DNA from: Oculina patagonica
Lineage: Eukaryota
NCBI RefSeq assembly: GCF_052425735.1
Contig: NC_135761.1
Span: forward strand, 51,956,001 to 52,020,000
Direction of reading: 5' to 3'
DNA: 64,000 bases
Shown piece after piece: positions 29,202 through 31,009 of the stretch (position 1 is the stretch's first letter; each line of letters starts with the position of its first letter). The translations under genes were made by a program, and so were the position numbers. The notes under the pieces are model-generated. The model saw only the letters and a list, made by a program, of their open reading frames with translations, was not told where the DNA came from and did no database searches.

Positions 29202-31009
29202 TTAAAGTTCAGGGTGCAAGCTCTGGCCGCAACTTCGACAGTCAATATCGTCATCATACTCTTCGATAGCTGAATTAAGTGGCTTGTAAGATCGAGCTTT
29301 CCATACCGTTTTGAGGCCAGACCAATTGCTCTTTGTGTTAGGATCACTGAGGTTATCAAGGTCGGCTCGGCGAAGCAGTTTGCCATCTTTTACTTGAAAC
29401 ATAGGATAGTTGTTGTTCTCGTTTGCGTCTACAAATGGTATGTAGTCTGTCACCACACTTGAATCTGTTGTCTTCTCAGGATACAGGAACGCGTTGTAAA
29501 CGTGATTGACGGACGCCTGGACCGCATCTATTGCAATTCTGTAGTTGCCTTCACTCTCTTCGTTCAACAGCATGCCGTCGCCATAAGCAATCCACTTATC
29601 ACCTCTTTTGTTTGTAACACGGAGACCGTATGTGTTGTCTTCGTCGTGCATGTATTTGCTCAGCAAGTGGCCAACTTTAGAAGGTGTTATTTGCTTTGCA
29701 AGTTCAAGCCTGGGTGTCCTAAGAATACAATGTACAGGAGTCATTAAAACTCGGTTATAATATTTCTTCATGTTGTGCCTCTTGGCCTCTATATTATTGT
29801 ACATCCGAAAATACGAGTATCCCCTGATTTTACCGAGAAAAAAATAAAAAATATTCGGGTATTAAAAATGAATGCAATAACAGAGGTACTACGCGCGATT
29901 TAAGTGAATCCTCAGCCGTGATCTTTTGAGGGACTGATGGTCACTCTAACAAACGGGGAAAATATTTATATCGTTTAAATCATTTTTGAATATGAATTGA
30001 ATGGCTACAAAATCTTTCAATTTTAATAAAACTATTTTCTTCGGCAAGCAGTGGACGATAGGAGCTGTACCAAGAAGTTGTTATGAACCAGAGTTTGAAA
30101 GACGATTTTAAATGACACTTCAACATGACTTCTTACACAAAAATGTAAACAAAAACTAATTGCTCTGGCGTTTTTACGTGCTTTTTCAAATCAACTATCT
30201 CACCTTAGATGTCCACTGGAAAAGCTATCTGTTAGAAAATGACAGGCAAACGCATCGATGGTATACGCTTCCTCAAGGAGCCTTATCTTTGTTTCTTGAT
30301 GTTTAACTTTACTTGCTTTTCTTGCCTTCTCCAAAGCCCACTCGTGGCCAGCTAAGAAAGCTTCTTTTGCAAACGGCAGGAAGTGGTCGTGATTGTTTTC
30401 TGCCAACTTCATCATTCGTCCAAATATGACAGGAAGACCTAAGAGCCATGTACCACCAGTGACTTCGTCCCACTTCTCTACCAGTGAGTTCCCTAGTTTA
30501 TCGTAGACATCTTTGGGAACCGTTTCTCCCTGACTCTCTAGCGCAGCTTCAATTTGACTCTTCTCCTTCGTCATTATTTTCAAGATCTGATCGAGTTCTT
30601 TCTTGATATCATCGTATTCTGCACTTGCTAGAGTGTTGTAAGCTGCGATAAAACGCTGGCGACGGCCAGTTGTCTTTTTATCATGTTCCTCGGATGGATC
30701 TATAATGGGGCTCTCTGGGACGCCGTAGAAATCTCCTGCTAAGGCAATGATTTGGCCAAAAGAAAGCTCCAATCCATTAGGAAGCCTCAGGAGGCGGTCA
30801 GCGCCCATCACGGCCTGCTCTCGACTACCACTGCACGGATTTGACACTGGAAATCGAAGCTTGACTTTATTTCCTATGTTTTCGTGCTCTGCTGACTCGA
30901 ATTCTTCTCCTTCTGTCTCCCCAGTATTGACTGACTCAGGTGTACGTTTGATAATGTTAGTCAACAGCTCCATAAGGCTTTTCTCCTGCGAAATTTCATC
31001 GGGCTCCAT
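29202..31009 (-). CDS. Zinc-dependent phospholipase C, Legionella PlcA/PlcB / Pseudomonas fluorescens PC-PLC-like family; 440 aa, exons 31009-30204 and 29718-29202
   Basis: Motifs FESAEH, ALAGDFYG, NHDHF, HFLTDSFSSGHLR|TPR, MHDEDNTYGLRV, W.AYGDG; a 485-bp GT-AG intron joins HLR and TPR in frame. Confidence 0.8.

Follow-up and report, generated by a model that had tools for sequence, protein, structure and literature searches.

The DNA considered here is a 64,000-nucleotide (nt) stretch of the genome of the stony coral Oculina patagonica (NCBI RefSeq assembly GCF_052425735.1, contig NC_135761.1, positions 51,956,001 to 52,020,000), referred to below as the window, in whose coordinates positions are given unless otherwise stated. 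Its minus strand carries a two-exon gene whose product is assigned by sequence to the phosphatidylcholine-type phospholipase C (PLC) family known from Legionella. The gene truly belongs to the coral, is under constraint and is part of an old cnidarian family; it is not a recent transfer, and its ultimate origin is likely, although not proven, to be bacterial. The gene consists of the following parts, where the slash in GHLR/TPR marks the exon junction.

30204..31009, minus strand: PLC coding exon 1, 806 nt, encoding residues 1-268 and the first two bases of the Arg269 codon, with the motifs FESAEH (37-42), GDFYG (D93), NNHDHF (D208, H209), H222, CHFLTD (H257, D261) and GH (H267)
29719..30203, minus strand: PLC spliceosomal intron, 485 nt, GT..AG, phase 2, within the Arg codon of GHLR/TPR
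29202..29718, minus strand: PLC coding exon 2, encoding residues 269-440 and the stop codon, with the motifs RTPR (R269), YMHDEDN (H293, E295) and YGDG (D316)
31010..31069, minus strand: PLC 5' untranslated region (UTR), minimum extent, covered by a transcript contig (run X2) that is colinear with the genome to 31069
28818..29201, minus strand: PLC 3' UTR of about 384 nt, bounded by the end of the X2 contig at 28818, with AATAAA at 28824-28819

Splicing, transcripts and the translation start

The gene spans two minus-strand open reading frames (ORFs), one at 30200-31009 (269 amino acids) that ends in ...CHFLTDSFSSGHLR and a second at 29202-29804 that contains RTPRLELAKQ...YMHDEDN. Exon 1 ends in CAT CTA AG/GTGAGA and exon 2 begins at TTCTTAG/G ACA CCC AGG; from these letters the intron is therefore 30203-29719, splitting the Arg codon of GHLR/TPR. 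The spliced coding sequence of 1320 nt plus the stop codon encodes 440 amino acids, a translation obtained by in-script removal of the same intron that the NCBI model and the transcripts remove. The spliced protein contains GDFYG, NNHDHF, CHFLTDSFSSGHLRTPR and YMHDEDN, which are all four of the motifs on which the first-pass annotation of this DNA had based its two-exon PLC gene, and the ORFs, the junction letters and the NCBI model bear out that structure.

The NCBI model of the locus, P0005 (LOC144648836, 'uncharacterized protein', 373 amino acids), has a junction identical to that of the 440-residue reading. Transcript contigs from two runs, belonging to two studies and carrying two organism labels, omit exactly the 485 intron bases (29717->30203, CT..AC on the plus strand), so that the GT-AG intron proposed within GHLR/TPR is skipped precisely as predicted. 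The X2 contig, 1772 nt long, is colinear with the genome from 31069 to 28818 and ends at the canonical AATAAA.

The two readings differ at the N-terminus. Eight codons upstream of the ATG at 31009 there is an in-frame TAA, located inside the stretch covered by the X2 contig, which precludes any earlier translation start. The NCBI model, whose first residue is Met68, leaves out 67 N-terminal residues (30809-31009, minus strand), including FESAEH, a motif that is kept in the orthologues of other corals, is at least 90% conserved across the family and is covered by the transcript contig. Because the model omits this conserved FESxEH motif, the 440-residue reading from the ATG at 31009 is the better one, and the annotation of LOC144648836 is probably N-terminally truncated.

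The gene lies on a 64.4-Mb chromosome (64,437,903 bases). GC content across the window is 36-41% and that of the gene is 38-40%, like its flanks, with no break at the gene. Integration into and processing by the host are thus supported by the chromosomal location, the GT-AG intron that is absent from the transcript contigs, the AATAAA signal and the host-like GC content.

Family assignment and conserved residues

In a BLASTP comparison, P0005 shares 35% identity over 359 residues (E 8e-66) with the L. pneumophila phospholipase P0298 (423 amino acids), upholding the earlier assignment to the Legionella-type PLC family. When an L. tucsonensis protein was used as query, the matches were Legionella proteins named 'phospholipase' or 'phosphatidylcholine hydrolyzing phospholipase', P0298 among them. 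Language-model neighbours in the Atlas carry the automatic cluster names 'Phospholipase C family protein' (Ascomycota) and 'Dot/Icm T4SS effector family protein'. On the basis of its sequence, the coral protein is placed in the zinc metallophospholipase C family of PlcA/PlcB/PlcC type, which occurs in Legionella, Pseudomonas fluorescens and fungi. Aurass and colleagues reportedly described Legionella PlcA, PlcB and PlcC (CegC1) in 2013 (J Biol Chem 288:11080, as cited in PMC10149971 and PMC6617341) as zinc metallophospholipases C and mutated 15 residues of PlcC.

In an alignment of 134 sequences, the columns of D93, D208, H209, H257, R269 and H293 (numbered by the 440-residue protein) are invariant, and those of E41, H42, H222, D261, H267, E295 and D316 are at least 90% conserved. 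The coral protein retains every one of these residues, and each of the family motifs examined, FESxEH, GDxYG, NxDHF, HxLxD..GHxRxPR and MHxED, is present. By analogy with the family, Zn2+ would be bound via E41, H42, D93, D208, H209, H222, H257, D261, H267, H293, E295 and D316, and the expected reaction would convert a phosphatidylcholine-type lipid into diacylglycerol and a phosphorylated head group.

No Pfam (E<=1) or NCBIfam family was found for both exons, for P0005 or for the bacterial homologues, and neither a single sequence nor the 134-sequence profile gave a genuine match to a sequence in the PDB. Judged by these searches, the family has no curated sequence model and no solved structure.

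The N-terminus of the coral protein is not hydrophobic (maximum 15-residue Kyte-Doolittle mean of 0.44 in the first 50 residues). Sec- or Tat-type signal peptides occur in several bacterial members (for example L001, L007, P0133 and P0298); the signal of P0298 is of the twin-arginine type, as is that described for PlcA (lpg0502; PMC6617341). Since a signal peptide is absent, the coral enzyme is probably intracellular. A propeptide rule for the family was considered and rejected: FESxEH lies a few residues past the signal peptide in L001 and L007, 50-115 residues into many other proteins and at Met1 in one, and because its position varies in this way among bacterial members, N-terminal processing is not a family rule.

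Predicted fold

The full-length orthologue P0022, which has 75% identity with the window protein across 388 tree columns, was modelled with AlphaFold2 using the family alignment, giving a mostly helical structure (predicted local distance difference test, pLDDT, 88.9; predicted template modelling score, pTM, 0.87). The top six PDB matches of this model in VIA-align all belong to one superfamily, with Z of 8.1-5.7, 139-152 aligned residues and a root-mean-square deviation of 3.7-4.2. They comprise Clostridium absonum alpha-toxin (Z 8.1), two PLCs at Z 7.0 (the Listeria broad-range enzyme and that of B. cereus) and, at Z 5.7-6.0, three S1/P1-type nucleases. All six cover model residues 32-360, with the Phe of FESxEH (residue 32) aligned to chain residue 1.

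Among AFDB clusters and Atlas entries, proteins named 'Phospholipase' and 'Phosphatidylcholine-hydrolyzing phospholipase C' were found at template modelling (TM) scores of 0.7-0.8, together with weak S1/P1 nuclease matches in both resources (AFDB 'S1/P1 nuclease' at E 2e-7). A Foldseek search of 550,129 Swiss-Prot models, which include those of model animals, found no structural relative. Distant kinship with the trinuclear-zinc PLC/P1 nuclease fold is, from the modelled structure, probable and not proven.

Cnidarian copies, intron position and selection

Three further two-piece PLC copies lie at C4:51770428-51789830 of the Oculina genome, 170-215 kb from the window gene, which is thus one of four clustered paralogues. 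Two of them, L036 and L037, have an intron at the identical codon and phase (CG/GTAAAT ... CAG/G), of 334 and 561 nt respectively. The match to the third, L038 (G000:C4:51777781-51779400), is in three pieces with intervening stops and may be a pseudogene. Outside Oculina, the coral assembly L033 has an intron of 218 nt at the identical place, L035 has the identical donor, and the putative Aurelia gene models end exactly at ...GHIR. A protein of the octocoral Dendronephthya gigantea also belongs to the family, and the named animal matches in a non-exhaustive metazoan search are all cnidarian.

The window gene is under strong purifying selection. Compared with its L033 orthologue (77.5% amino acid identity), the ratio of nonsynonymous to synonymous substitution rates (dN/dS) is 0.19, with a synonymous divergence (dS) of 0.65, and between two Oculina paralogues dN/dS is 0.27. 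As the first-pass annotation had argued, the gene is not bacterial contamination: it resides on a chromosome, shares its intron with its paralogues and gives rise to spliced transcripts.

Distribution of the family outside cnidarians

The family comprises 2742 clusters at 50% identity, and its named bacterial holders belong to Pseudomonadota, Myxococcota, Chlamydiota, Verrucomicrobiota, Bdellovibrionota, Actinomycetota and Chloroflexota. In a scan of bacteria with one genome per species, identities were 40% for a metagenome-assembled genome (MAG) of Myxococcaceae, 37% for Legionella resiliens and 33% for L. tucsonensis; a Rhabdochlamydiaceae symbiont of Dictyostelium has four copies, and further holders are other Chlamydiae, Verrucomicrobia, Pseudobdellovibrionaceae, Myxococcales, Gaiellaceae/Solirubrobacteraceae and Anaerolineaceae. 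The family profile matches 65 of the 121 Legionellales genomes sampled. Giant-virus MAGs encode homologues of 434 amino acids with an N-terminal transmembrane anchor (L028:2845-4146 and L029:2812-4113).

Many Legionellales genomes also match a second time, more weakly (E 1e-11 to 1e-25), in ORFs of 530-570 amino acids, examples being G039:C1:15074-15556, G098:C1:11690-12160 and G042:C1:9964-10431; in five of the contigs listed, its distance from the contig start is 10-18 kb. The second match may be of the PlcC/CegC1 type (locus tag lpg0012).

Fusions of the PLC domain include one with FG-GAP repeats, seen in P0134 and P0136 (the former on a 13.8-kb contig taken as bacterial), one with eCIS_core in Actinomycetota and one with a fucose-specific lectin in Basidiomycota. 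As an effector domain it seems to have been reused widely.

Phylogenetic placement

The phylogeny was inferred with IQ-TREE (LG+C20 with posterior mean site frequencies, PMSF) from 90 domain sequences and is unrooted. It leaves out 85 of the 147 full-domain proteins of a first FastTree tree, most of the listed Legionella orthologues and the partial loci L011-L013 and L015-L025. Cnidaria form a single clade (support 99/93) of two subclades. Subclade A (99/98) consists of the window gene, those of other corals and the putative Aurelia sequences, and subclade B (100/99) consists of an Oculina paralogue, Montipora and Dendronephthya.

The sister of Cnidaria is P0126 (99/91), encoded by an intronless gene on an AT-rich (36% GC) TARA Oceans scaffold with long, ORF-poor flanks. 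The next sister is P0122 (98/96), which is bacterial-looking. The contigs of P0122 and P0395, at 52% GC, carry strong intrinsic terminators and encode an N-terminus resembling a signal peptide. Those of P0122 contain ten terminator-like hairpins where 4.1 would be expected; one of the ten, perfect and bidirectional, lies 160 nt past the stop codon. A region-restricted search with P0122 returned only eight proteins, among them two named fungal sequences; a scan of JGI metagenomes gave matches at or below about 40% identity and no closer relative of P0122, and an Atlas look-up of an ORF neighbouring P0122 (score 0.75) was uninformative.

The fungal clade (Cordyceps and Chaenotheca; 100/99) adjoins P0149 (90/88), whose contig is bacterial and densely packed with genes. 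A tree constrained to unite Cnidaria and Fungi is worse by 144.6 log-likelihood units and is rejected by the approximately unbiased (AU) test (p 4.8e-10). The giant-virus proteins sit on a long branch at a great distance from the cnidarian clade.

Origin of the cnidarian gene

Taken together, the window gene is reasonably likely to be a functional nuclear coral gene of the PLC family whose ancestor came once from a bacterium and then gained an intron and duplicated; a single ancient bacterium-to-cnidarian transfer is the most economical account, with somewhat better than even prospects of being correct. A bacterial PLC gene would have entered the cnidarian stem lineage once, an intron would then have been gained, and the gene would subsequently have been duplicated into the family of two subclades. 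The first-pass annotation had put the gene forward as a candidate domesticated horizontal transfer. The tree fits that proposal, with Cnidaria beside the bacterial-looking P0122 and apart from the fungi; the proposal has to be modified in that the transfer, if real, is ancient and cnidarian-wide and not specific to Oculina, and its direction and age are inferred.

Several points weigh against this account. The tree is unrooted, its deep nodes are weak (31/20 to 87/90), most sequences neighbouring the cnidarian clade are unnamed metagenome proteins, and the named fungal sequences number two. The closest relative, P0126, is possibly eukaryotic, and P0122 is regarded as bacterial-looking on indirect grounds only. 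The Aurelia label depends on how a EukProt identifier is read. The activity and substrate of the coral enzyme are extrapolated from the family, a Foldseek search of the PDB with the P0022 model gave no match, and Z of 7-8 is middling for helical proteins by the tool's own scale. The RNA library type of the runs that yielded spliced contigs is only a guess, and the poly(A) raw-read runs X13 and X14, with 0 reads on the PLC locus, provide no test. White & Cianciotto, moreover, read the distribution of the family as transfer from eukaryotes to Legionella (2019; PMC6617341).

That opposite polarity would follow if the family were anciently eukaryotic, inherited vertically by cnidarians and fungi and lost elsewhere, with Legionella, Chlamydiae and other amoeba-associated bacteria as the recipients. 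PlcA and PlcB have been placed in a group of PC-hydrolysing eukaryotic PLCs that extends from yeast to corals and called 'eukaryotic-like' (PMC6617341), many of the named bacterial holders are intracellular in protists (Legionella, Aquicella, Rhabdochlamydiaceae/Parachlamydiaceae), and the cnidarian family is old, with an intron common to both subclades and to several species. Vertical descent is nevertheless unlikely, given the rejection of a joint clade of Cnidaria and Fungi by the AU test above, the position of the fungi beside a protein whose contig is clearly bacterial, the presence of the family in seven or more bacterial phyla, free-living and predatory groups among them, the frequency of signal peptides and of bacterial-type fusions (FG-GAP, eCIS_core) and the lack of a relative in the Swiss-Prot model organisms. 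A bacterial gene could also have reached cnidarians via another eukaryote or a giant virus. Consistent with such a route, the intronless P0126, with its 36% GC and ORF-poor flanks, looks eukaryotic or viral, and giant-virus MAGs encode homologues (L028, L029); those viral proteins are, however, distant from the cnidarian clade and on a long branch, the source of P0126 could itself be a cnidarian or another zooplankter, and the next sister, P0122, looks bacterial, so that an intermediary of this kind is rather doubtful.

Two further alternatives concern the gene and not its route. The coral protein might share the fold and not be a PLC, acting instead as a nuclease or another phosphoesterase or being a non-catalytic derivative, since the fold superfamily includes S1/P1 nucleases (Z 5.7-6.0; AFDB match at E 2e-7), PLC-like activity in coral is only extrapolated and bacterial-type secretion signals are absent. 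The full-length 35% identity to the Legionella PlcA-type protein, the retention of all family-invariant residues, the ranking of PLCs above nucleases among the fold matches and the strong purifying selection make this very unlikely. That the locus is bacterial contamination, an assembly artefact or a dead pseudogene is suggested solely by the bacterial affinity of the protein and has practically no standing against a 64.4-Mb contig, flank-like GC content, spliced transcripts, an intron common to paralogues and orthologues, an open frame and a dN/dS of 0.19. Direct, single entry from a bacterium into an ancient cnidarian remains the preferred explanation.

A linked serine protease and local duplications

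The neighbourhood of the PLC gene contains a protease gene and fragments of both genes, as follows.

31905..33197, plus strand: trypsin-like (Trypsin_2) serine protease, single exon, 430 amino acids from Met41 of the ORF
37783..37969, minus strand: PLC 3' fragment, comprising the last coding bases and 3' flank, direct repeat D5, 94%
26258..26500, plus strand: protease 3' end fragment, 90% amino acid identity to residues 394-470 of the protease ORF, direct repeat D4, 96%

The protease, whose match to Pfam Trypsin_2 (E 6.8e-6) lies just under the cut-off, has no signal peptide and an acidic N-terminus, and is head-to-head with the PLC gene at an ATG-to-ATG distance of 895 nt. Protease orthologues lie beside PLC orthologues at L035:4425-5729 (60% identity, head-to-head, 272 nt away), L044:1123-2415 (77% identity, head-to-head) and L033:11380-12675 (77% identity, tail-to-tail). 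This linkage of PLC and protease in at least three other coral-derived contigs is the new finding here. The protease is single-copy in the Oculina genome, and is absent beside the three other PLC paralogues and beside all bacterial and giant-virus homologues that were fetched. A complex prediction for P0022 with the window protease scored 0.01, which is evidence neither for nor against binding.

One proposal, tentative and on balance improbable, is that in stony corals the PLC and a cytosolic protease form a conserved, co-regulated cassette with a short divergent promoter, in which the protease controls the lipase; the linkage has been kept among species whose proteins share only 60-77% identity. 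The protease might, for example, remove the acidic N-terminal extension of the PLC just before FESxEH. If true, this would amount to a protease-gated membrane-attacking module with a gene of bacterial origin at its core, for use in immunity, in cell death or in digestion inside cells.

Relics of local tandem duplication flank the pair, with 26262-29306 matching 32968-33557 and 35687-37951 at 83-97% identity, and the PLC-protease unit was duplicated with a period of about 6.7-8.8 kb. The protease fragment to the left and the PLC fragment to the right are what this duplication left behind. Within the PLC fragment, 37850-37969 encodes a C-terminal piece with 85% amino acid identity to residues 334-373 of P0005. 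A 141-nt repeat is present in the window at 27606-27746, 27942-28082, 31213-31353, 36355-36495 and 36976-37116, one copy sitting in the PLC-protease intergenic region, and also near the paralogue cluster about 180 kb away (G000:C4:51781311-51806961). The first-pass annotation had placed the gene among host transposable elements; for this repeat, the one examined, a dispersed element is ruled out by the confinement of its copies to the window and the vicinity of the paralogue cluster.

Elsewhere in the window, ORF pieces at 45498-45959 and 51449-52240, both on the minus strand, match Pfam DUF885 ('bacterial protein of unknown function'), the C-terminal piece with E 8.6e-39, and a run of N at 44476-44975 adjoins them. 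Judging from these matches, they look like exons of one DUF885 gene, perhaps a further case of bacterial affinity in the window.

Implications

Cnidarian genes labelled 'uncharacterized protein' gain a name and a testable activity, that of the kind of zinc PC-PLC which Legionella secretes or injects. If the bacterial origin holds, the transfer between domains is older than the split between hexacorals and octocorals, and the intron gain, expansion and purifying selection that followed make it a clean case of a foreign gene turned animal gene. For the Legionella literature, in which the label 'eukaryotic-like' is given to PlcA and PlcB, the tree argues that corals and fungi are separate recipients and not the source. 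The conserved protease partner offers a concrete lead to the function of the coral PLC.

Comparison with known phospholipases

The coral PLC does not represent a novel type of system. White & Cianciotto 2019 (PMC6617341) noted homologues in Acropora, Orbicella and Stylophora in a remark based on BLAST and a tree only, to which gene structure, intron, paralogy, selection, fold and protease linkage are added here; no literature devoted to cnidarian PLC genes was found.

Legionella PlcA, PlcB and PlcC are homologous to the coral protein over the whole catalytic domain, with the same motif set and the invariant His, Asp and Arg residues. Unlike them, the coral PLC has neither a Sec/Tat signal nor a type IV secretion system (T4SS) context; it carries a 36-residue acidic N-terminal extension and a Cys-containing acidic C-terminal tail, and its gene has an intron, lies on an animal chromosome as one of a family of four copies and has a protease gene linked to it. 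The fungal PC-hydrolysing PLCs (Cordyceps militaris CM01 P0400 and Chaenotheca gracillima P0399) are of the same family, are eukaryotic and likewise lack bacterial secretion signals, but their clade is a distinct one, grouped with bacterial sequences, and some basidiomycete members are fused to a lectin. The likeness to the classical zinc PLCs and S1/P1 nucleases (1ah7, 1olp and 8cqm; PF00882 and PF02265) appears, from the model, to be one of all-alpha fold class. In contrast to the classical zinc PLCs, with which it has no detectable sequence similarity, the coral protein is about 400 and not about 245 residues long and has extra helices and beta hairpins.

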